From positions 18,724,001 to 18,788,000 of the forward strand of contig CM106586.1 in assembly GCA_048013815.1 (NCBI GenBank): a DNA stretch of 64,000 nucleotides, read 5' to 3'. The translations under genes and the position numbers were made by a program. Below, in pieces: positions 47,924-62,400 of this stretch (position 1 is its first letter; each line of letters starts with the position of its first letter). The notes under the pieces were generated by a model. The model saw only the letters and a list, made by a program, of their open reading frames with translations, was not told where the DNA came from and made no database searches. Source of the stretch: Setoptus koraiensis (Eukaryota; Animalia; Arthropoda).

Positions 47924-49884
47924 ATGGCCGCCAGGAAGGGCATTCTATTCAAATGGACCAATTATGTGCATGGGTGGCAATCAAGATTTTTCGTTGTTAA
48001 AAACGGCATTCTCATGTACTATAGATCAGAGCAAGAGACCTCATTTGGGTGCCGTGGCGCAATATCAATAATGGCCTCAACGTTGACACTACACGAATTT
48101 GATTGTTGCCGATTCGATGTGGGCGTCAGTGATTATGTCTGGTATCTACGTGCCTCGTCAAAGGATGAACGTGATGAATGGCTACAAGTATTGAATCTTC
48201 AGGCTAAAGAGCAACAGCAACAATTGATTGGACTAAACATCACAAACGATGGACTAGAGCTGTCCTTGAACCAACACCAGACAACAGTAACGGATACGCC
48301 ATTCATTGAGTCATCTATTATTCCACTATTGAATGCAATTTCCTGCCAAAATAATGATTCAAAGAAATATCACAACCACTCCCCGTCGCTTATATCTTCC
48401 GATGAATCAGCAACCTTACAAAATCAACAAGATGAACCTAGTGAGTTTTTTGATGCCATAGATGATCAGATTTTGATAGAGAATTCTGAAAATTCAGCAG
48501 CCACTATCCTTAGCAACAATTCTGTTTTACATACATCAGTCAAGATTGGCCATCATGGTTATCACTCCGCTGAAAATGGTGATCAACCAGACAGAGATTC
48601 ACAGACACTTTTAGCAAAAACCCCAAATCACATTAATAGCATAGACAACAATGAAAACAATAATTTAAAATGTTCAAGAAACACTACTACTACTACAGTC
48701 ACAACTACTAGCAACAACTACAAAACCCCCTCGATGCAGTCTATTCAGCATCCATTGTGGTCCAAAATTGACCTCATCACTTCCGAGCAGTTATTCTATG
48801 CTCAAATGGGCCTAGGACAACAAGGAACGCATGAAGGCTGGCAATTATTCGCAGAGGATGGCCAAATGAGAATGTATACACGCGAAATGGAAATCGACGG
48901 GCTTGTTTGTGATCCCCTAAAAGCGGTCCATGTTGTCAAGGGTATAACTGGATTCGAAATGTGCCATAGATTCTTCAGTCCAGATCTAAGATTTGAATGG
49001 GAACAAACTCTCGAATCCATGAAGGTTGTGGAAGAGATTGATAAAAACACACAAATATTTCACCAGATACACAAAAGAGTCTGGCCAGCCGCTCAGAGAG
49101 ATGCAGTATTCTGGTCCCATATAAGGCAAGTGGCTGAACCACAGGCTAGTTGTCTATCCCCCGATGATGACTACCCGAAAAATCGTCCAGATTTAAAGTT
49201 GCACAGCGTTTGGATTGTATGCAACAATTCTGCTGATAAGCCAGATATTCCAGTAAGTACTAGGACATTTACACTAATTGTTGACACTTATGCTTGATTG
49301 TCATTAATTCAATTATTTGTCATATTCTTTGACCTTAAACTATCTCACACACACACAGTTGGATAGATGCGTTCGTGTTAGATTGACTGTGAGCCTAGTC
49401 TGTGAGACATATATAAGTGCTAATTTAGATTCCAATCTACAAGGAATAACACGGGACGATTTAACGTGCAAAATAATTTATTCATCTACAAGTAAGTATA
49501 CTTAAGTGAGCTATTTCTTCCTCGTCTTAGATCGAGTGAAATAAGAATCCAAAGAGCACACGTCATTCACATAACTATGTCAGTGCCATCAATCACCAAT
49601 GTTACCTCTTGTTGGTTGTGCATTGAGTTGCATAAATCTACCTTAATTAACAGTGTCCTAACTTTTTCTACCAGCACGATTCAACAATCTAGCTAACCTT
49701 CGACTAATTAATTAATCCTTATATTTTACTCATGTCATGTGATGTTATTACAGTAAATCCAGGTGGTTGGGCTCCGGCTTCAGTGTTGCGTACCTTGTAC
49801 AAGAGAGAGTATCCTCGATTCTTGAAAAACTTCGCCAATTATGTCATAAGCTCTACGAAGAATAAAGCTATAATTTTTGAGTAA
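47924..49884 (+). CDS. CERT1: Ceramide transfer protein (PH-FFAT-START), 3 exons, ~530 aa
   Basis: Exons 47924-49252, 49359-49491 and 49754-49884 (gtaagt donors, cag acceptors, phases 0 and 1). PH motif [12 protein letters not shown]; FFAT motif EFFDAID; START motifs [23 protein letters not shown] and [24 protein letters not shown]. Confidence 0.93.
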
Positions 49885-50111
49885 TGCAAAGTGGAGATAA
49901 CATCATTTATTAAACTTGAACACACAGATAACATTTGATATATTTATTATTATCTACGTATTCCTTTTGGGATGTATTTGTTTGTTTGTGTGAGTTGATT
50001 TTGGGTAAATCGACTTTTTCTTTTAAACAGGTTCCTAATAATTGTCTTGAACTAAAACTATACAACAACAACAATATTTATAACGAAATTATTAACTAAT
50101 TTACAAATTTA

Positions 50112-50115
<4 letters not shown>

Positions 50116-50186
<71 letters not shown>
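50116..50186. repeat. (CT)n microsatellite in the left arm
   Basis: About 35 CT units; the equivalent right-arm position (~60360-60425) is only a degenerate GA-rich tract. Confidence 0.92.
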
Positions 50187-50188
<2 letters not shown>

Positions 50189-50326
50189 ATCTTCGTCTCA
50201 TTAACTTCGTCTCTATCGTTTCTGTCGCTCTTGCCTACCATTTCCTGTTACTTTCGGTATAATTATATATCATCTATAATCACACTGTATCTATCCATAT
50301 ATCTATCTCCTTATTTACACTGACAG

Positions 50327-50913
50327 TGCTTACCACAAACTTGGTTAGTTTGTGTGGAATTACAATTGATATTGTTGACAGTTCCAATAATTTACTTTCT
50401 GAACAAAAACTATGAATATCAAAAGGGGGAATACAGTTGGAAGACTGCTCCAAGTGTACTATTACTAGGCGCTATACTCATTGGGGCTTGTTACAATTTT
50501 TACAATGTCTACATGAATCAGCTTCCACCTGCTTGGTCTTATAGGATGGCAGATCCAGATGGTAAAGCCATTTATTTTAGCCAACACATGTTTACCATAT
50601 TTCTGTACCAGATGAGGATAGGAAATTCACTTGTCTATCTAGGTTACTTGCGCATCCAATATTTGTTGCATTTGGCAAACTATCATTTTTGGCTTATATC
50701 ATTCATCCTATTGTTCACATGAGCGTTTTGGCCATACAAGAGCAACCAATATTCTCTAGTTGGCTCATGCTATTTCATGTATTTAGTGGAAATATCATAT
50801 TGACTATCGGACTATCGTTGTTAATATCGATATTTGTTGAGATGCCTATTAGAAATTTATTCAGACGAAGCCGCACTTGTATGCTTCTGGGCAGCACCAG
50901 GTACATTCAATGA
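50327..50913 (+). pseudogene. Orphan duplicate of the last exon of the NRF-6/acyltransferase-3 gene, with a net 271-nt frameshifting deletion
   Basis: Inverted copy of 60266-59409 that keeps its tgacag acceptor. It is 587 nt versus 858 nt; the deletion joins ...FSQHMF to the ...VPDEDRKF region near 50592. Upstream exons were not duplicated because the breakpoint lies in intron 3. Confidence 0.85.
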
Positions 50914-52431
50914 GGACCTATTATGCTTCATGTGTGATCTAACTAATGTTCCCTCAGCCAAAGCGGCCAATAAAGATAACTCGCCCGCCAATACAGAGGC
51001 ACAAACAATCCTGGCAAATTTCTCTGCGTTATAGCCCGGCTTATATGGGGGTAGCGATGATCCATTGATTCCCATCATTTTGAGACAATTACTTTGAGCC
51101 TCTAGTATAGTTCCGCCGCCCACCGTACCACATTCAATTGATGGCATCGTACAATGTACTACCAACGAGCCATTTTCGCGATCTTGACTCATGCTAATTA
51201 TACAATTCGAGCTAGTTACATTCTGAGCGGGATCTTGGCCACAAGCAATATATAACGCCGTCACAATATTGGCCGCCTGAGAATTAAATCCACCTATGCT
51301 TCCAGCCAGAGCTGACCCAATCATTACTTTATCCCTCCATAGGTCCACCATTTTCTCAACGGACACCTTCAGTACAGATTGTACTATTTCCTTTGGTAAG
51401 GTTGCTTCGCATTGGACGTCCTTGCCGCGTCCATTTATCCAATTCACTGCAGCCGGCTTTTTATCTGTACAATAGTTACTACTCAAACTAACCACCTCCA
51501 TTGAGGGAAATGCTTTTTTTATCTCTTCTAAGGCTCTTTCTGTTCCTTTAGACAACATATTCATGCCCATTGCGTCACCGGTGGTAGCCATAAATCTTAT
51601 GTACAATAGATGGCCTTGCCGCTTGATTGTATAATCTTCTAATTTGGCATATTTAGATGTCGAATCAAATGCTGTGATTAATTTCTCCTTATTGTGTCTA
51701 TCCTCGAGCCACAGCATGGCCTCTTCGACTTCTTCAAGATTTCGCAGCTTTACACAGGGAGCTCGTGTCATGAAATTTTTCGCACAATGACTCTTGACAC
51801 CGCCGCTTTTGGTTAGTGCAGAAAAGGCACGGTTTGTACTGGCAACCAAACAACCTTCTGTGGTTGCCATTGGAACATATAACTCTTCATTATCCAACAA
51901 TAATGGTCCGGCCACCCCCACTGGTACTTGAACATAACCAATAACATTTTCACAACAGGCACCGACCACCCTGCCATAATCAAAATTGTCCACGGGCAAA
52001 TTTTTTATACCTTCAGCACGATCGTAAGGTAGCTTCTGTGAATAGAATAACCTCCTCACTCTGACGCTTCTGTCTGGATTGCCGATGTATGTCTCCAATT
52101 TGTGGACCGCAATGAGCTTTTGATTGAGAAGTTCTATTAATACGCGATCATCTAGCTGTGATGCATCGAAGCTACCATCTAGGATCTGTTTTTTATAAAA
52201 ATCAATATTACAATTATTTACATTTTGTTGTTGCTGTTGTTGTTGTTGTTGTTGCTGTTGTTGTAGTTGCTGCTGTTGCGATTTACCGCTGCTCTGTGTC
52301 TGAACAGCGGCAGCTAGGTGCTGTTTTGGCGGGTGATTGTTATTAAAATAGAGGTTAGTGTGAAAATCTGACTGATTGACTTGCAACTGGGGAGCTTGAA
52401 CGTGAACTCCATTACCATATTCGGAACACAT
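50857..52431 (-). CDS. HMGCR: HMG-CoA reductase, class I catalytic domain, copy L (524 aa, no membrane domain seen)
   Basis: Motifs ENVIGY, PMATTEGCLVASTNR, TGDAMGMNMLSKG, cis-loop NYCTDKKP, ACGQDPAQN, GTVGGGT and C-terminal HMKHNRS (catalytic His and AMPK-site Ser); uninterrupted ORF. Confidence 0.95.
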   Translation of the reverse strand: MCSEYGNGVHVQAPQLQVNQSDFHTNLYFNNNHPPKQHLAAAVQTQSSGKSQQQQLQQQQQQQQQQQQQNVNNCNIDFYKKQILDGSFDASQLDDRVLIELLNQKLIAVHKLETYIGNPDRSVRVRRLFYSQKLPYDRAEGIKNLPVDNFDYGRVVGACCENVIGYVQVPVGVAGPLLLDNEELYVPMATTEGCLVASTNRAFSALTKSGGVKSHCAKNFMTRAPCVKLRNLEEVEEAMLWLEDRHNKEKLITAFDSTSKYAKLEDYTIKRQGHLLYIRFMATTGDAMGMNMLSKGTERALEEIKKAFPSMEVVSLSSNYCTDKKPAAVNWINGRGKDVQCEATLPKEIVQSVLKVSVEKMVDLWRDKVMIGSALAGSIGGFNSQAANIVTALYIACGQDPAQNVTSSNCIISMSQDRENGSLVVHCTMPSIECGTVGGGTILEAQSNCLKMMGINGSSLPPYKPGYNAEKFARIVCASVLAGELSLLAALAEGTLVRSHMKHNRSSLNVPGAAQKHTSAASSE

Positions 52432-54361
52432 AACAATAGTGGTTTGGGGGGTGGCTGGCTGGCTATAAGTAGTAAATGGTGGTGGTGGTGGTAGTGGTGG
52501 TAGTGGTGGTAGTAATAATAATTAAGATTGCTATTGCTAATTGATTGATCGTTGTTGATTGGGCTAACAGGCTGTTGTCAATGTCGTTGTCTTGGTGATA
52601 GTGATAGACACAATTGCGGTAACAATGCTAATACACAAATAACAATAACGGATATTGATATATTATTACTATTATTATTATTATTATTATTATTATTGGT
52701 AATACTAGAGTCGTCCGTGTTGATGGTGTGACAGTTGTGGATGACTTGATGCAATAATGTTGTTAGGAAGGAAATAAATCACCATATATAGCAACATTAT
52801 CTCTTGCCCTTGCTGTGATCAATCAATTGATGCCTACTGTTGAAGGTACGACGCTGATGCAACGATGATAGTATTTTGATATGAAATGATATGATGTGAT
52901 ATGATGTGATATGATATGATGTATGAATATTAAGATGATAATGATATTATGACTCGAGACGTTGTATGACTTTTGCAAGAAGACGACGAAGAAGAAAAAG
53001 AATAAGTCGTTGTTCTGTAGGGCAATCACGATTTGTCGGCGTTCTTCAGCGACCATATAATGTTGTGGTCTGTAAAGGGCACATAGAGTCTTAGAGTGTG
53101 TGTGTAGCGTATATCGTGGTGGTGCGAATATCCTCACCGAGTTGTTAAAAGATCTGTATTAATCAAATGGTGTGTTACTCAATGTTTTTTGTATATGCGA
53201 AAATATTTGTTGGCCTGGTGATGGGTGTTTTTGTGCATTAATTTAATCAGGTGTATGTGTGCATGACATATGATATGCGTTATGTTGGTAGACGATGATG
53301 ATAGGCGATTTTAGTTTTGATGTTGATGTGAAAGTCTTTATGGTTCAAGAGTATACGGCCAAAGAGTACAGTAGTGCTAGTGTCTAGTATTGGCCCGACG
53401 ATGTCTGACGTTACGTTAAAAGACGGCGATCTTTATCTCATCATCATTCATTTATTTAATTTTCCTTTCCTTTCCCTTCTTGTCCCTCTGTTGTGTTCTG
53501 TTGTGCTCTCTTCTTCTTCTTTTCTATGTTATTCTATTGCTGACTATTGCCTATTGCACTGTCTTGGTGTGAGCTGAAACGAAGCAACGAACAGAAAGAA
53601 TTAGGTCAACGAAACTAAATAGAGTGGGCATCATCATCATCATGACGCTGATGCCAAGCAACAGGTTGCAACAACAACAATAACGGGCTCATGATGTAGG
53701 CTGATAGATAAAGCTGAAGACTCTTCAGCTTTATCCATCAGCGCCGCCAAGCCGCCGACAGCAGCGTCTTCGTCGTCGTCCTATCAATGAGTTAGCAGCC
53801 TCAGCTAATCAACATTTATGCTATATCATGCTGACGCTTACCTGACTGGTGGCCGACTGAGCTTTTTGCGAGATACAGTCAAGCATCGCAATATCAGCTC
53901 AGCGGCACATTGTTGAGCTGTCTGGCATAATTCTCATTGATGATAGCGTCAGCAGAATCACTTTTTGTCGGTTTGGCCAATTTCGTCGTCTGGCGATTTC
54001 TCTCTCTCGCTCTCCCGTCTGTTTTATTCATCAACTGCGCTCATTCGCCTACCTTCCCACAACTTCAACCTGATGCCATTAGATTTGTAGTACTGCAACT
54101 TTTGTTGGTGGTTGTGTCCACTCTGACAGGACAACTTGTCGTTTGCTGGTTGTGTTGGTGCCGCTGATTACGCCGACTCGCCCAGTCCGGCTGACCACTG
54201 CTGTCAACCGCCAGAGCAGGGCCTTTTTGTTTTCAGCCATTTTTACTCGTGAGTGGCAATGGCATTAACTGTGCATTGTCAACAGTGAAACTGTTATGCC
54301 TAACCAATCACAGTTAATTTTGCAGTTAATGCCATTGCCACTCACTAGTAAAAATGGCTGA

Positions 54362-54394
<33 letters not shown>

Positions 54395-56229
54395 AAAGCC
54401 TCTGCTCTGGCGGTTGACAGCAGCGTAATCAGCGGCGCCAAGACAAGAAGCAACGACGAGTTGTCCTGTCAGAGTGGACACAACCACCAACAAAAGTTGC
54501 AGCACTACAAATCTAACGGCATCAGGTTGAAGTTGTGGGAAGGTAGGCGAATGAGCGCAGTTGATGAATAAAATAAGCGTTCGCAAGAACTCGCAAAGAA
54601 TGCTGGACGTAGCTTGATAAATAGGAGATAGAGAGGGGAGACAGAGGGCGAGGGGAGAGGGAGAGGGAGAGAGACCGGGAGACAGAGAGACAGAGAGCGA
54701 GGGGAGAGGGAGAGAGAGAGACATAGAGAAATAAAATAATTTGAAAGGGCCCGAATTTCTATCTCGTCTCTATTTTTTATTTTATAAAATAAAAAATTAG
54801 CGTAACTTTGCTTAACACTTGTTTACTTTTCGTCACTGACTCCCATCTCCCATGGCACACGCCCCCTCCCTCCCGTGTCCCCACAAAAGCCGTGACTCCC
54901 TTGGAAGTCACTTCCGTGACACGAAGAAAATAAATTTATTCTTCTTTTTTCGCAAGGGGAAAACTCTATGGGATTTTTACACGTAAAGGGGGGATCGCGC
55001 CTTTTTCACTGTGTCTACCACAAAGGCCCAGAGACATTGGCAGACATTTACGCACGGCACACTCACACGATTTGTGCGCTCGCGCACCGAGAAAGAGGGG
55101 AAAGCCGAATAGAATTTTAACACACAAAAGGGGGACACGTTCTTTTACTGTATTCATCCCTAAGGTAATATCCCGACCCAACAGATAGGAGAGAGAGAGA
55201 GCGAGAAATCGCCAGACGACGACAAAAAGTGATTCTGCTGACGTTACGTTGTATCATCAATGAGAATTATGCCAGACAGCTCGGCCGGCTAGCATTTAGG
55301 TAAGCATTCAGTGAGCATGATAGCATAAATGTTGTTGATTAGCTGAGGCTGCTAACTCATTGATAATACGACGACCAAGATGCTGCTGTCGGCCGCTGAT
55401 GGATAAAGCCGCTGAAGCTTTATCTATCAGCAGCCTACATCATGAGCCCGTTATTGTTGGTGCAACCTGTTGCTTGGCGTCAGCGTCATGACGACGACGA
55501 TGCCCACTCTATTTAGTTTCGTTGACCTAATTCTTTCTGTTCGTTGTTCGTTTGGTGGCAACTCTGTGCCAGTTACCGCCACAATCACACTCACAGCTGT
55601 GTTGGCTTGTCAGCTGTTGTGCCTGGAAAGAAGCTGGCCCGTTGTAAAGAAGCGCACGCTAATCAGTTGGGCACAGTTGAGGCATCGTAAGTAGACTTAC
55701 GCGCGTCTTACAGTTGTGCGCCGCATACAGTTGGTCACTGACGCTGGCAAGCTAGCCAGTCATTTGGCTAGCCAGCCATTCGGCTGGGCAGCCATTGAGC
55801 CCGGTTTCACTCAACGGCGTTGAGTGAGTTGCCGCCAGAGTACATGTAATGTAATGGCGTTGAGTACATCACACTCGCTCACAGTCGGTGCTGGGGGCAG
55901 ACGGCTCGTTCATTGGGCAGGCACATGCGCACCGATGGGCGGCTGTCCGCTGCCCCTGTGCAGCGCACGGGCATGCCCCGCCGCCCATAGGCGGCGAACT
56001 GCTGGGCAGTCGCTGCCCATGCAGCCGCCCCTGCCCCCAGCATTATTTACTGAGTGAGTGCATGCTGAGAGATAGAGCATTTCTCACAAGTCAGATAGAG
56101 CCGTCGTCGACGTCGTTCCTCACAAAACTGGATTGTTACCCTTTCTCTGTTAATTTTCGTCTTGTCGTCGCTACTACTGCTATTGCATCATCAACAATTT
56201 GTTTGCCATCAATTTGCGGTTACTAAATA

Positions 56230-56438
56230 CAGGGTGAGTCAAATTCAACTGGCTAACTTTGGAATGGAATATCTCAAGAACTAGACGCCAAGGGGCGTTC
56301 AAATTGTGTTCACTATGGAAGGGGATCGAAGGTATTGGTTGACCTCGGTTTCGTAATGGAAGAAAATGAGCGCGCTCTGGCGTCTAGTTCTCGAGATATT
56401 CCAATTCAAAGTTGGCCAGTTTAATTTGACTCACTCTG
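56230..56438. mobile_element. 209-bp MITE, Tc1/mariner type
   Basis: Imperfect ~61-bp terminal inverted repeats (cagggtgagtcaaattcaactggctaactttgg... versus reverse complement cagagtgagtcaaattaaactggccaactttga...). TA dinucleotides flank both ends (56228-29, 56439-40). No coding capacity. Confidence 0.85.
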
Positions 56439-57202
56439 TATTTGTTGTATACGCTCACTATTATATTTATAATAATATTAATAATAATAATATCAGCTAT
56501 ATATACATTTGGAGTATTGTGATTGTATTCAACGGCAACTATAAATATTCCTGTATGTGTGTGTCTGTTTGTCTGTCTGTCTGTCTGTGTCCGTGTGTGT
56601 GTGCGTGTACGACTGCCTGGCTGTGAGCGAGTGAGCGATCGAGCGTGTGAGTGTGTGTGTCTTGGATCACATAAATACATAAATCATATTATTCGCGATA
56701 ATATTATCACTGATAACTTATTGATAGTGATATTATTAATATAATATTAATAATACACAATAAATACTGGAGATAACTGGCAATAGCAACAGTGGCAATA
56801 ATATGATATAAGAAGGACGTTATTAGCACATGGATTTTTTAGCGCACACCAAGACAGTGCAATAGGGAACAGTCAGCAATAGAATAACATAGGAAAGAAG
56901 AAGGAGATAGCACAACAGAGAAAAAAGGAAAAGGAAGGAAAATTAAATAAATGAATGATGATGAGATAAAGATCGCCGTCTTTTAACATAACGTCAGACA
57001 CCGTCGGGCCAATTCTAGACGCACCACTGTACTCTTGAACCATAAAGACTTTCACATCAACATCAAATCTCAAATCGCATATCATATGTCCTGCACACAT
57101 ACAACTGATTAAATTAATGCACAAAAACACCCGGCCAACAAATATTTTCACTCAACATTGAGCAGCACACCATTTGGTTAATACAGATCTTTTAGCAACT
57201 CG

Positions 57203-57270
57203 GTGAGGATATTTGCACAACCACGATATACGCTACACACACACTCTGAGACTCTATGTGCCCTTTACAG
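57203..57270 (+). other. Probable 68-nt GT-AG intron in the HMGCR 5' leader, conserved in both palindrome arms
   Basis: ctcg|gtgagg ... ctct(g/a)ag ... gccctttacag| is preserved in the right arm (+) and the left arm (-, ~53070-53137). Confidence 0.45.
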
Positions 57271-57890
57271 ACCACAACATTATATGGTCGCTGAAGAACG
57301 CCGACAAATCGTGATCGCCCTACAGAACAGCGAAATATTCTTCTTCGTCTTTTTGCAACAGTCTTACAAAGTCTCGAGTCCTACTATCATTATGGCATCA
57401 TTATTATCTTAGAATATTCATACATCATATCATATCGCATCATATCATTTCATATCAAAATACTATCATCGTTGCATCAGCGTCGTACCTTCAACAGTAG
57501 GCATCAATTGATTGATCACAGCAAGGGCAAGAGATAATGTTGCTATATATGGTGATTTATTTCCTTCCTAACAACATTATTGCATCAAGTCATCCACAAC
57601 TGTCACACCATCAACACGGACGACTCTAGTATTACCAATAATAATAATAATAATAATAATAGTAATAATATATCAATATCCGTTATTGTTATTTGTGTAT
57701 TAGCATTGTTACCGCAATTGTGTCTATCACTATCACCAAGACAACGACATTGACAACAGCCTATTAGCCCAATCAACAACGATCAATCAATTAGCAATAG
57801 CAATCTTAATTATTATTACTACCACCACCACCACCACCACCACCATTTACTACTTATAGCCAGCCAGCCACCCCCCAAACCACTATTGTT

Positions 57891-59465
57891 ATGTGTTCCG
57901 AATATGGTAATGGAGTTCACGTTCAAGCTCCCCAGTTGCAAGTCAATCAGTCAGATTTTCACACTAACCTCTATTTTAATAACAATCACCCGCCAAAACA
58001 GCACCTAGCTGCCGCTGTTCAGACACAGAGCAGCGGTAAATCGCAACAGCAGCAACTACAACAACAGCAACAACAACAACAACAACAGCAACAACAAAAT
58101 GTAAATAATTGTAATATTGATTTTTATAAAAAACAGATCCTAGATGGTAGCTTCGATGCATCACAGCTAGATGATCGCGTATTAATAGAACTTCTCAATC
58201 AAAAGCTCATTGCGGTCCACAAATTGGAGACATACATCGGCAATCCAGACAGAAGCGTCAGAGTGAGGAGGTTATTCTATTCACAGAAGCTACCTTACGA
58301 TCGTGCCGAAGGTATAAAAAATTTGCCCGTGGACAATTTTGATTATGGCAGGGTGGTCGGTGCCTGTTGTGAAAATGTTATTGGTTATGTTCAAGTACCA
58401 GTGGGGGTGGCCGGACCATTATTGTTGGATAATGAAGAGTTATATGTTCCAATGGCAACCACAGAAGGTTGTTTGGTTGCCAGTACAAACCGTGCCTTTT
58501 CTGCACTAACCAAAAGTGGCGGTGTCAAGAGTCATTGTGCGCAAAATACGATGACACGAGCTCCCTGTGTGAGCTTGCGAAATCTCGATGAACTCAAAGA
58601 GGTCATGCAGTGGCTCAAGGATACACACAATAAGGAAAAATTAACCACAGCATTTAATTCGACATCTAATTATGCTAAATTAGAAGATTATACAATCAAG
58701 CGGCAAGGCCATCTATTGTACATAAGATTTAGTGCTATCACTGGCGACGCAATGGGTATGAATATGTTGTCTAAAGGAGCAGAGAGAGCCTTAGATGAGA
58801 TAAAAAAGGCATTTCCCTCAATGGAGGTGGTTAGTTTGAGTAGTAACTATTGTACAGATAAAAAGCCGGCTGCAGTGAATTGGATAAATGGACGTGGCAA
58901 GGACGTCCAATGCGAAGCAACCTTACCAAAGGAAATAGTACAATCTGTACTGAAGGTGTCCGTTGAGGAAATGGTGGATCTATGGAGTAGTAAAGTAATG
59001 ATTGGGTCAGCTCTGGCTGGAAGCATAGGTGGATTTAATTCTCAGGCGGCCAATATTGTGACGGCGTTATATATTGCTTGTGGCCAAGATCCCGCTCAGA
59101 ATGTAACTAGCTCGAATTGTATAATTAGCATGAAACAAGATCGCGAAAATGGCTCGTTGATAGTATATTGTACGATGCCATCAATTGAATGTGGTACGGT
59201 GGGCGGCGGAACTATACTAGAGGCTCAAAGTAATTGTCTCAAAATGATGGGAATCAATGGATCATCGCTATCCCCATATAAGCCAGGCTATAACGCAGAG
59301 AAATTTGCCAGGATTGTTTGTGCCTCTGTATTGGCGGGCGAGTTATCTTTATTGGCCGCTTTGGCTGAGGGAACATTAGTTAGATCACACATGAAGCATA
59401 ATAGGTCCTCATTGAATGTACCTGGTGCTGCCCAGAAGCATACAAGTGCGGCTTCGTCTGAATAA
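57891..59465 (+). CDS. HMGCR: HMG-CoA reductase, class I catalytic domain, copy R (524 aa, no membrane domain seen)
   Basis: Same catalytic motifs as copy L; 24 amino-acid differences from copy L by manual comparison. Confidence 0.95.
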   Translation: MCSEYGNGVHVQAPQLQVNQSDFHTNLYFNNNHPPKQHLAAAVQTQSSGKSQQQQLQQQQQQQQQQQQQNVNNCNIDFYKKQILDGSFDASQLDDRVLIELLNQKLIAVHKLETYIGNPDRSVRVRRLFYSQKLPYDRAEGIKNLPVDNFDYGRVVGACCENVIGYVQVPVGVAGPLLLDNEELYVPMATTEGCLVASTNRAFSALTKSGGVKSHCAQNTMTRAPCVSLRNLDELKEVMQWLKDTHNKEKLTTAFNSTSNYAKLEDYTIKRQGHLLYIRFSAITGDAMGMNMLSKGAERALDEIKKAFPSMEVVSLSSNYCTDKKPAAVNWINGRGKDVQCEATLPKEIVQSVLKVSVEEMVDLWSSKVMIGSALAGSIGGFNSQAANIVTALYIACGQDPAQNVTSSNCIISMKQDRENGSLIVYCTMPSIECGTVGGGTILEAQSNCLKMMGINGSSLSPYKPGYNAEKFARIVCASVLAGELSLLAALAEGTLVRSHMKHNRSSLNVPGAAQKHTSAASSE

Positions 59466-62400
59466 ATTTCTAATAGGCATCTCAACAAATATCGATATTA
59501 ACAACGATAGTCCGATAGTCAATATGATATTTCCACTAAATACATGAAATAGCATGAGCCAACTAGAGAATATTGGTTGCTCTTGTATGGCCAAAACGCT
59601 CATGTGAACAATAGGATGAATGATATAAGCCAAAAATGATAGTTTGCCAAATGCAACAAATATTGGATGCGCAAGTAACCTAGATAGACAAGTGAATTTC
59701 CTATCCTCATCTGGTACAGAAATGTGGTATAAGAACCAAGTTAAACTTAATGACCACAATATCCTAGAACTGGCATTATAAATACCGGCTATTGTTGGCG
59801 ATGGTAGATCACCTGTCGACCAATCATGTGTTGAAAATATAATCACCAACATTACACAACAGGCCGTTATACCTGCGATAAAGTCCAACATGATTCGACC
59901 ACAATTGCCACTATTCGATGAGAACTTTCTCGTCCTAATCCTGCACTTATGACCAGCTATTACACCAATTGCAAAAACTGATATATGTGTCCATGTCTTG
60001 AACATATGTTGGCTGAAATAAATGGCTTTACTATCTGGATCTGCCATCGTATAAAACCAAGCAGGTGGAAGCTGATTCATGTAGACATTGTAAAAATTGT
60101 AACAAGCCCCAATAAGTATAGCACCTAGTAATAGTACACTTGGAGCAGTCTTCCAACTGTATTCCCCCTTTTGATATTCATAGTTTTTGTTTAGGAAGTA
60201 AATTATTGGAACTGTCAACAATATCAATTGTAATTCCACACAAACTAACCAAGTTTGTGGTAAGCACTGTCAATGTAAATAGGGAGATAGATATATGGAT
60301 AGATACAGTGTGATTATAGATGATAAATAATTATACCGAAAGTAGCAGGAAATGGTAGGCAAAGAGACAGAGACGACGGGATACGATAAAGACAGAGTTG
60401 AGGAGAAGAAGATGTAGAGAGGGATACATAAATTTGTAAATAAGTAGATAATTTCGTTATAAATAATGTTGTTGTTATATAGTTTTAGTTCATGACAATT
60501 ATTAGGAACCTGTTTAAAAGAAAAGTCGATTTACCCAAAATCAACTCACACAAACAAACAAATACATCCCAAAAGGAATACTTAGATAATAATAAATATA
60601 AAAGAATGTATTATATCACCGTTCATGTATCACACACTCGAATCGCTTCGAATTCTTTCAGATTTTCCATGAAGTCACTTGTAGTTCCTCGAGCTCTGTT
60701 TAGATTAGAGCAATCGCTACACTTACCATTTTTCCATAGGGCAAAAGGTTTTGTATGAAGAAGGCATTGATCCAGCCGTTCTGTTGACACACTTCCGATT
60801 GGCTTACAACGTAATCATTCCAAACGGGGCCCTTGTAGGCCAGTGGCAATAAAATGACAAGAGCCGTCACAACCATTACAGAGGGCATTAAACGGGCGTA
60901 TTTGTCGACAGTGTATTTGACTAATGTCTTCATATTTGAGTCGATATTTTGATAGGCCAGCGTGAAGGCCGTCAGTAATATGAGTGAGTCATATTGTAGA
61001 GTACTATTGATGATGAACTCCACTGGCCACCAATTAATGAGATCCTTTAATAACATCAATTCGCGTAAATATTCAAATTTGAGATTAACAGTTGATTCAA
61101 CAATGATGAACCACATGACGAATAGAAATTTCAATCCGTATAAAGCTAATGGTTTCTGATCGGACAATTGTTCATAATCTACTTTCGTGTGACACTCTAT
61201 AGATCGTCGCAACGACAACGATTTCAATATAGATTTAATTGCATGCGGCTTCTCCGTTTCCTGCAGTAACGAAATGGTCAGCACAGAGGCCAACAAAACT
61301 ATCGTGACCAGAACAATAGGTAATAGAGCCCAACCAATTTGAAATATGTCATACCGTCTGTCCATGGCATCTATCTCTTGTTCGCATCTTAACACTTTGA
61401 TTTTGAGATCAATTCTTTCTGATAGGTAACTGGCCGCCTTTTGAATGTCCTGGGGTGGACACAACGAGGGCACACAAACATCGAATCTGATATTGACATA
61501 GTTGAAGGCCAGCGCCAATTCGGACATCTCGTCGGAAATTGTTTTCTCGTACCATTCATTCTCCGATCCGCTCATTAAGGCCGCCAGTTTGGTGTTGAAA
61601 TTGTAGAAACGTTGTTTCTCCGGCAGCCATGGTTTCACTTGAAGCACACAATATTGTCCCCGGAAATACTCACTAAATTCGCCTGTAAACTCAATTTCGT
61701 CATCATCGGGCGCTCTAACTTTGAGACACTGGCGATAATTGCCAAACATGGTCATGGAGCCCTCTAGAATTCCCGCGCCAGGCTTGCCGGAGGCGTCCAA
61801 CACTGGAGGTAGAGATAATTTAATTGAGACAGTTATTTCAATCAACTTCAACTAACGAGTTAGCTATCGATTGTGGTCAACTTTTTGCAAGTCGGATTGA
61901 TAGTGGCAGTGATGAGTGGATGACTTACTTCGTAGCGACCAGCTCTTCAATTGATTCATGCCCAGGATCCACTTGAGTAGCGCACCCGAACAGTTACTAC
62001 TAATTTTGGCCTCTCTAGATAGATTCAGTGCCAGTGGTACAATGCTGCCTATTGCACTTTGGATACCTAAAACAAGAATAGTTATGCAACAAATAAACAC
62101 GACAATGTTGAGGTTACATACAGTTTAAGTATATTCTGGCCACTCAGATGCCACTTACCCTTTTTCATTCTTTTCTCCATTTTACTCCAAATTTCAATAA
62201 CTTCCTCTTCTGGCTTGAACGAGGAATATACTTCATTTATTTTAGTCATGTTGATTGAATTGTAGTCGAAGGCAGGCACCGATTTCACTGGTTCTATTTG
62301 GGGCTCTGCACGATCACTAACACTTGGCACGGTGGTGGTATCAGATGGGTCGGTCTGCTGATCAGATGCAGCCGATGTGTCGATACGCCGGGGCAGCAAA

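Follow-up and report, generated by a model that had tools for sequence, protein, structure and literature searches.

In the palindromes of sex chromosomes (human Y P1-P8, primate and mouse X; PMC8600007, PMC8327919), two inverted arms with a coding gene apiece are separated by a short stretch of unique sequence, and intrachromosomal conversion is the best explanation for their near-identical tracts. These arms measure from 10 kb to megabases, exceed 99% identity and harbor a testis gene family. Fold-back inverted duplications (Hermetz et al. 2014, PMC3907307) likewise set an inverted copy beside its source with a single-copy spacer between them, but there the spacer spans 0.7-70 kb and the rearrangement is terminal and accompanied by a deletion. 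Paralogue pairs of HMG-CoA reductase (HMGCR) in plants, fungi and teleosts (PMC3983158, PMC4037427) also go back to lineage-specific duplication followed by divergence, and are dispersed, tandem or whole-genome duplicates.

Here, we describe a palindrome with two HMGCR genes in a 64-kb stretch of the genome of the mite Setoptus koraiensis (the window). It has the general architecture of the sex-chromosome palindromes, including the near-identical tracts, but its arms are short (4-6 kb), unequal and a mosaic of 81-100% identity, and it carries a housekeeping metabolic gene and is absent in two related genomes. In contrast to the fold-backs of Hermetz et al., the spacer is only 51 nt long and the structure is interstitial, flanked on both sides by intact genes. 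At the left-arm/spacer junction (54271/54272) we saw no clear inverted microhomology, or any homology. Unlike the known HMGCR pairs, the mite genes are arranged head-to-head, and in the literature searched we found neither a head-to-head HMGCR palindrome with ongoing conversion nor any relevant work on mites that concerns a duplicated or a soluble HMGCR. We consider it probable that the locus is a real, lineage-specific inverted duplication whose arms have undergone conversion, with a conservative left copy and a right copy that is diverging or under relaxed constraint.

Palindrome structure and ancestral gene order

An earlier note on this DNA, made from the sequence alone, had described a palindrome of ~10.7 kb with a spacer of ~50 nt, and both the inverted arms and the spacer were recovered here (Table 1). 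The palindrome is the sole repeat of at least 150 nt in the window. The innermost 49 nt of the two arms pair with at most three mismatches, and the spacer holds an extra copy of the arm-terminal 8-mer (54311-54318). Overall arm identity is about 94% across a 3-kb core with many indels, below the >99% over whole arms of sex-chromosome palindromes; the inner 700 nt were compared via BLAST segments, a global MAFFT alignment having misplaced that part. The extra length of the right arm (6.3 kb, against 4.3 kb for the left) comes from three right-only stretches (about 54574-55179, 55554-56836 and 59730-60000), which cannot be polarized as insertions or left-arm deletions because no similarity to the window was detected in outgroup intergenic DNA. 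A transposon was rejected for the ~1,285-nt stretch, as it recurs in the genome just as scraps of 50-110 nt and its ORFs have no Pfam match. Structured RNAs were likewise not found, with no Rfam match between 49000 and 61000.

Table 1. Positions of the palindrome, its genes and its conserved and diverged segments within the window
Feature	Position	Strand	Remarks
CERT-like gene	47924..49884	+	PH and START domains; last exon to stop 49882-49884
Left arm	49939..54271	.	Derived, inserted copy; polarity from passenger exon and outgroup loci
Broken NRF-6-like last-exon copy (left arm)	50354..50913	+	271-nt frameshifting deletion at 50592/50593; 10 substitutions
Near-identical tract, putatively homogenized	50609..50908	.	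300 nt, 100% to 59414-59713; HMGCR 3' end and downstream
HMGCR-L	50857..52431	-	524-aa ORF, conservative copy
Diverged island, HMGCR-L	51514..51780	-	Codons 218-306; small NADPH-binding domain, human 585-673
Near-identical tract, putatively homogenized	51809..52870	.	1,062 nt, 99.3-100% (99.6% overall) to 57464-58513
Spacer	54272..54322	.	51 nt, unique; CCAAT motif 54304-54308
Right arm	54323..60600	.	Ancestral locus; longer through three right-only stretches
Largest right-only stretch	55554..56836	.	Multi-copy element ruled out
HMGCR-R	57891..59465	+	524-aa ORF, fast-evolving copy at ancestral position
Diverged island, HMGCR-R	58542..58808	+	33/45 nucleotide differences between ORFs
NRF-6-like intact last exon	59409..60239	-	276-aa ORF, acyltransferase-3 part
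NRF-6-like gene body	60700..62067	-	NRF domain; small intron ~61775-61900; GTAAGT donor near 60727

The two outer ends differ. The left arm begins 54 nt past the CERT stop, so that the adjacency claimed earlier stands with a longer distance than the ~40 bp given, and the sequence does run on from the right arm into an NRF-6-like gene as claimed, although the arm itself stops inside the last intron of that gene. Membership of the NRF-6 family was established exon by exon in separate searches, with a match to the NRF domain (PF20146, E = 4e-16) in the gene body and with PF01757 carried by homologues of the last exon. An in-frame stop at 61864-61866 raised the possibility of a pseudogene, which we rejected because the stop sits within the small GTAAGT...CAG intron. 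The last exon overlaps the 3' end of HMGCR-R by 57 nt; its counterpart in the left arm is broken by the frameshifting deletion, as had been described before, and its three nonsynonymous changes are all left-derived.

Related metagenome contigs provide the polarity. Two of them (L003 and L004) each carry a single HMGCR, convergent (tail-to-tail) with an NRF-6-like gene, the ORF ends overlapping by 51 and 114 nt, respectively, and neither contains an inverted self-match of at least 60 nt; in L004, CERT also lies upstream of HMGCR, at a distance of 5.4 kb. The nearest relative has its ORFs for HMGCR (P0001), NRF (P0121) and the NRF-6 last exon (P0150) on a single 7,035-nt contig. From the single, convergent HMGCR of L003 and L004 and the upstream CERT of L004, it follows that the order of CERT and HMGCR followed by a convergent NRF-6 represents the ancestral state and that the left arm was inserted, which supports the previous proposal that the right arm is the original one.

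From this ancestral order, with overlapping 3' ends of HMGCR and NRF-6, we propose that a segment with one end within the last intron of NRF-6, the other ~3.5 kb upstream of HMGCR (measured on today's sequence) and HMGCR between them was copied in reverse and inserted 54 nt downstream of the CERT stop, yielding the head-to-head pair about its 51-nt spacer. The mechanism may have been a fold-back or a replicative template switch, an origin that would be compatible with the short spacer. Owing to the 3' overlap, any complete copy of HMGCR had to bring the last exon of NRF-6 with it, and this passenger exon would afterwards have lost its 271 nt.

Two membrane-less reductases with mosaic identity and unequal divergence

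Both HMGCR copies in the 48.8-Mb assembly lie in the palindrome, and their proteins are 95% identical. Each ORF matches PF00368 over profile positions 6-368 of 368 (E = 1e-132 to 1e-134). The alignment to human HMGCR (1DQ8) spans the catalytic portion (E = 6e-139), with E192, K324, D400 and H500 invariant in both copies and equivalent to human Glu559, Lys691, Asp767 and His866. The mite enzymes thus share the class I catalytic domain of membrane-anchored animal HMGCR and are 52-57% identical to spider and horseshoe-crab orthologues, but in place of the membrane and sterol-sensing domain of those enzymes both copies have a short Gln-rich leader. Searches of the window for membrane or sterol-sensing (PF12349) exons, by tblastn with eight full-length orthologues and with a home-built profile of 73 N-termini, returned only noise. 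Nine related enzymes derived from metagenomes and SRA data also have a hydrophilic leader and no membrane domain; on the sequences compared, the membrane-less form is the normal state in this clade. The earlier description of two intact, divergently oriented HMGCR genes consequently stands for the open frames and head-to-head order, with "intact" qualified by the absence of that domain. Neither ORF contains a stop or an indel, and with open frames and catalytic residues retained in both, the two copies are most likely expressed, soluble enzymes.

Divergence between the arms is distributed unevenly. Tracts of 99-100% identity lie on both sides of the diverged island, and windows of 81-92% identity adjoin them. 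The longer tract takes in codons 1-207 together with the 439 nt that precede the ATG, the latter 99.5% identical between arms; of the 45 ORF differences, only two lie within the first 651 nt (P = 2e-8), and synonymous differences are clustered too (P = 0.0035). Such near-identity within older divergence points to arm-to-arm gene conversion, which would have homogenized most of the gene and the proximal upstream region, in putative tracts spanning about 80% of the ORF, but would have left untouched the island in the small domain that binds NADPH.

When replacements were polarized against the nearest relative as outgroup, 17 unique ones were assigned to the right copy and two to the left (P = 7e-4), with branch lengths of 18.5 and 4.5; it is thus the gene at the original site that is derived. 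Changes in the right copy hit sites fixed in the nine related enzymes (F220, basic 228, V235, A238 and basic 366), and within the island its gain in replacements would have been about four times that of the left copy. We suggest that the left copy keeps the ancestral properties and that the right one is either acquiring a different function or evolving under a weaker constraint. That the right copy is the fast-evolving one had not been foreseen in the earlier note.

Whether selection has maintained both copies, as had been proposed, finds partial support. No indel has entered the ORFs where about 6 would be expected from the noncoding arm (14 gap events per 106 substitutions; P about 0.003), which argues for selection, but overall dN/dS is 0.52, only marginally below 1, and conversion is able to keep a copy open. 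An unlikely, though credible, explanation is a real duplication without selection for two copies, in which one gene, most likely HMGCR-R in its small domain, is on its way to becoming a pseudogene and owes its open frame solely to its young age and to repeated conversion by the functional gene. The roughly fourfold longer right branch, the changed positions that are otherwise conserved in the clade, an island dN/dS of 0.58 (not significantly below 1) and the extent of the conversion tracts would all agree with such drift, and dN/dS for the right copy alone comes close to 1 under an even division of the synonymous changes, a value that incipient decay could likewise produce. Against it stand the freedom of both ORFs from stops and indels, the unconverted island included, where about 4-6 indels would be expected, the retention of every catalytic residue, and the near-identity upstream of the ATG. 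At the other extreme, and with lower probability still, the copies may have split roles: selection against conversion would keep the island, the right copy would have altered cofactor or regulatory properties, and the left copy, being free of a 3' overlap with a functional convergent NRF-6, could be expressed independently.

Age and reality of the duplication, and its significance

Long-read assemblies are known to suffer from false inverted joins, and the palindrome could in principle be such an artefact, either two haplotypes joined head-to-head or a chimeric fold-back read. If this assembly is the CLR/Flye one of a pooled sample (PMC11920263), it was built from >100,000 wild individuals, with a reported heterozygosity of 1.13%. 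We regard an artefact as very improbable at this locus. The arms are nonidentical, with their 81-100% mosaic and indels of 271, about 600 and about 1,285 nt, so a single molecule sequenced in both directions is ruled out; the flanks show no mirror symmetry, with the left arm stopping 54 nt past CERT and the right continuing into NRF-6, so that two separate false joins would be needed; and the local divergence, at 13-19%, greatly exceeds the heterozygosity of that assembly. Equally improbable is an old palindrome that preceded the split from the nearest relative, its youth an illusion of concerted evolution: an island dS of about 0.1-0.2, inner-arm identity of 81-84% beside 0-2% divergence elsewhere, and a left-right distance in the island (17/89) equal to that between the left copy and the relative (16/89) would suit it, but the relative's HMGCR, which by its place beside NRF-6 corresponds to the right copy as positional orthologue, is nearer to the left copy in the island (16 versus 24 differences), and the protein collection holds only one HMGCR ORF from that relative.

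Genomes of eriophyoid-type mites are extremely reduced, and a retained HMGCR duplicate of 4-6 kb therefore stands out. Non-sterol isoprenoids have been suggested as the use of extra HMGCR flux, and retention hints at a demand either for isoprenoid flux or for a second enzyme variant. The locus is unusually well polarized, with an ancestral order from outgroups, a co-duplicated exon as internal neutral control and a sharp divergence island, and it offers a clean, small system for the competition between conversion and functional divergence. Were the roles of the copies truly split, it would represent a compact natural case of neofunctionalization inside a converting palindrome, in a genome that ranks among the most streamlined of any animal. 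In practical terms its value is modest and concerns the annotation and counting of HMGCR in these mites, along with two natural soluble variants to compare.

Palindrome structure and ancestral gene order

The arms and the 51-nt spacer came out alike from a seed-and-extend scan and from a BLAST comparison of the left half with the reverse-complemented right half. With one ORF in each arm, lying head-to-head, this confirms the palindrome with two divergent HMG-CoA reductase (HMGCR) genes, L and R, described in the earlier note. No other repeats of at least 150 nt were found in the 64-kb window outside the palindrome, and Rfam gave no RNA families across 49000-61000. The innermost 49 nt of the arms pair with at most three mismatches, and folding of the centre as single-stranded DNA predicts a hairpin with a stem of ~45 bp (z = -11.5). 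The arms are unequal in length, with three right-arm stretches lacking a left counterpart, the largest of which is not a multi-copy element and has ORFs with no Pfam match. Within the spacer, a CCAAT motif (54304-54308) lies halfway between the divergent genes, and the 8-mer with which the right arm starts occurs a second time (54311-54318), 4 nt ahead of that arm. The NRF-6 intron sequence within the left arm contains an expanded (TC)37 microsatellite (50112-50186); the matching right-arm site carries no more than a short AG-type run, rich in purines but impure.

Features of the palindromic HMGCR locus (window positions)
Feature	Position	Strand	Remarks
Left arm	49939-54271		inverted vs right arm; scan and BLAST agree
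Spacer	54272-54322		unique, 51 nt
Right arm	54323-60600		inverted vs left arm; scan and BLAST agree
Right-only stretch	~54574-55179
Right-only stretch	~55554-56836		largest (55554-56836)
Right-only stretch	~59730-60000
HMGCR-L	50857-52431	-	ORF in left arm, 524 aa
HMGCR-R	57891-59465	+	ORF in right arm, 524 aa
Arm identity 100%	50609-50908
Arm identity 87-92%	51509-51808
Arm identity 99.3-100%	51809-52870		codons 1-207 and 439 nt upstream
Arm identity 81-95%	52871-53555
Arm identity 83-84%	further in than 53555
Arm identity 95-98%	adjoining spacer
NRF-6-like last exon	59409-60239	-	276-aa ORF; homologues with acyltransferase-3 domain PF01757
NRF-6-like small intron	61775-61900	-	~126 nt; GTAAGT...CAG, in-frame stops inside

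A profile of the NRF-6 last exon recovered two related metagenome contigs, L003 and L004, as outgroup loci. Each holds a single HMGCR convergent with NRF-6 (NRF-6> <HMGCR), and neither contains an inverted self-match of at least 60 nt. Upstream of HMGCR lies a kinesin gene in L003 and, in L004, CERT, 5.4 kb away and oriented relative to HMGCR as in the window. The nearest relative's HMGCR (P0001), NRF ORF (P0121, 92% identical) and NRF-6 last exon (P0150, 97% identical) each lie on one contig, exactly 7035 nt long in every case, and HMGCR and NRF-6 parts are linked likewise by equal sizes for four more contigs (13898, 8160, 12785 and 10394 nt). The outgroup gene orders and single HMGCR indicate that the ancestral order is CERT> HMGCR> <NRF-6 and that the left arm is an insertion, bearing out the proposal that the right arm is ancestral, for which copy number and synteny in relatives had been suggested as a check.

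It is very improbable that the palindrome is an assembly artefact: one molecule read twice predicts identical arms, whereas the two here diverge by as much as 19% and are set apart by large indels, and a head-to-head haplotype join predicts mirrored flanks, whereas CERT on one side and NRF-6 on the other would need two false joins. Fold-back or template switching characteristically leaves the copy inverted next to its source, with a short unique spacer between them (PMC3907307), and we infer that the left arm would have originated in this way; the junction (54271/54272) has no clear inverted microhomology, only the extra arm-terminal 8-mer copy within the spacer. Literature searches turned up no description of this locus.

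Mosaic identity between the arms

Arm identity was taken in 150-nt windows, with BLAST segments used for the inner part, and varies along the arms. The 45 differences between the L and R ORFs are unevenly spread: the first 651 nt hold only two (P = 2e-8), and codons 218-306 hold 33 (P = 1e-16). These codons form an island that maps via the human catalytic-portion structure 1DQ8 to human residues 585-673, essentially the small NADPH-binding domain. Synonymous differences are clustered too (P = 0.0035), so the mosaic reflects history and not protein selection alone. The simplest reading would be arm-to-arm gene conversion with one island left unconverted, resembling the arm-to-arm conversion of sex-chromosome palindromes (PMC8600007, PMC8327919).

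Flanking genes and the passenger exon

Left of the palindrome, the last exon of a CERT-like gene with PH and START domains has its stop at 49882-49884; the left arm therefore adjoins the CERT end, as had been claimed, but starts 54 nt past the stop and not ~40. The right flank holds a minus-strand NRF-6-like gene, whose exons were searched one by one by reference, with no joined gene model. Homologues of ~650 aa match 62067-60715, the alignment stopping at a GTAAGT donor near 60727; given the position of the last exon, the right arm ends within the last NRF-6 intron. An in-frame stop (61864-61866) was rejected as damage because it sits within the small intron, which is probably common to the nearest relative, whose ORF starts at the same place.

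The NRF-6 last exon overlaps the 3' end of HMGCR-R by 57 nt (59409-59465), and the corresponding convergent overlaps are 51 nt in L003 (6198-6248) and 114 nt in L004 (10457-10570), making the overlap an old and conserved trait of the clade. Any complete HMGCR copy must thus bring the NRF-6 last exon along. This left-arm passenger exon has indeed decayed, as first suggested: compared with the right exon it carries a single frameshifting 271-nt deletion (exon nt 240-510) and 10 substitutions, seven synonymous and three nonsynonymous, the latter all left-derived when polarised with P0150. The 264 nt retained downstream of the HMGCR-L stop are near-identical to the right arm and probably form the 3' untranslated region of HMGCR-L.

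Two reductases and their asymmetry

L and R, the only HMGCR copies in the whole assembly (48.8 Mb, two sequences), share 95% protein identity, align with the HMG-CoA reductase profile along its full length (E ~1e-133) and retain the catalytic Glu, Lys, Asp and His (human 559, 691, 767 and 866). A genome of about 49 Mb in two chromosomes with near-intronless genes is in keeping with an eriophyoid mite (PMC7738191, PMC11920263). Neither eight orthologues of full length nor a profile built from 73 N-termini located a membrane or sterol-sensing domain exon in the window. This absence was rejected as damage, since nine related enzymes of 535-870 aa from metagenome or SRA assemblies (P0005, P0009-P0011, P0018-P0020, P0029 and P0031) likewise lack the domain and have hydrophilic Gln/Asn-rich leaders without hydrophobic spans there; a soluble reductase seems clade-wide, not peculiar to the S. 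koraiensis genome. The genes, called intact in the earlier note, are so by the standard of their clade, with open ORFs, but do not have the canonical animal architecture. Several of the membrane-domain-less related reductases begin with a common MPTSNQ motif. Leader residues 1-45 (52297-52431 in L, 57891-58025 in R) are identical in L, R and P0001, against a 10-19% protein difference beyond codon 45, a conservation unexpected for low-complexity sequence.

Neither ORF contains a stop codon, and the 14 gap events per 106 substitutions in the non-coding arm compare with none per 45 in the ORFs, where ~5.9 would be expected (P = 0.003; R alone, P ~0.02). The two arms share 99.5% identity in the proximal upstream region. 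Overall L/R dN/dS is 0.52 (P ~0.05 for <1) and that of the island 0.58, which is not significant; the R island is near neutral if synonymous changes are split evenly. On balance both copies probably function, R being either on a diverging course or under relaxed constraint. The proposed selection for two copies is plausible from the missing indels and stops and the upstream identity, and is less well served by the dN/dS values.

With P0001 as outgroup, 17 unique replacements fall to R and two to L, five being ambiguous (P = 7e-4), and three-point branch lengths over codons 218-426 are 4.5 for L, 18.5 for R and 15.5 for the relative. R is altered at positions fixed in the nine related enzymes (F220, basic 228, V235, A238 and basic 366), all retained by L. 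P0001 adjoins NRF-6 and is thus the positional orthologue of R; despite this it is closer to L in the island (16 differences vs 24 from R), which favours a duplication younger than the split from the nearest relative, followed by acceleration of R. Codon 260 (51652-51654 in L, 58668-58670 in R), which matches human Arg627, varies across the clade and so speaks only weakly for a cofactor switch: L encodes Lys there, R has Asn and the nearest relative Thr, and among the nine other related enzymes seven have Ser and two Lys.
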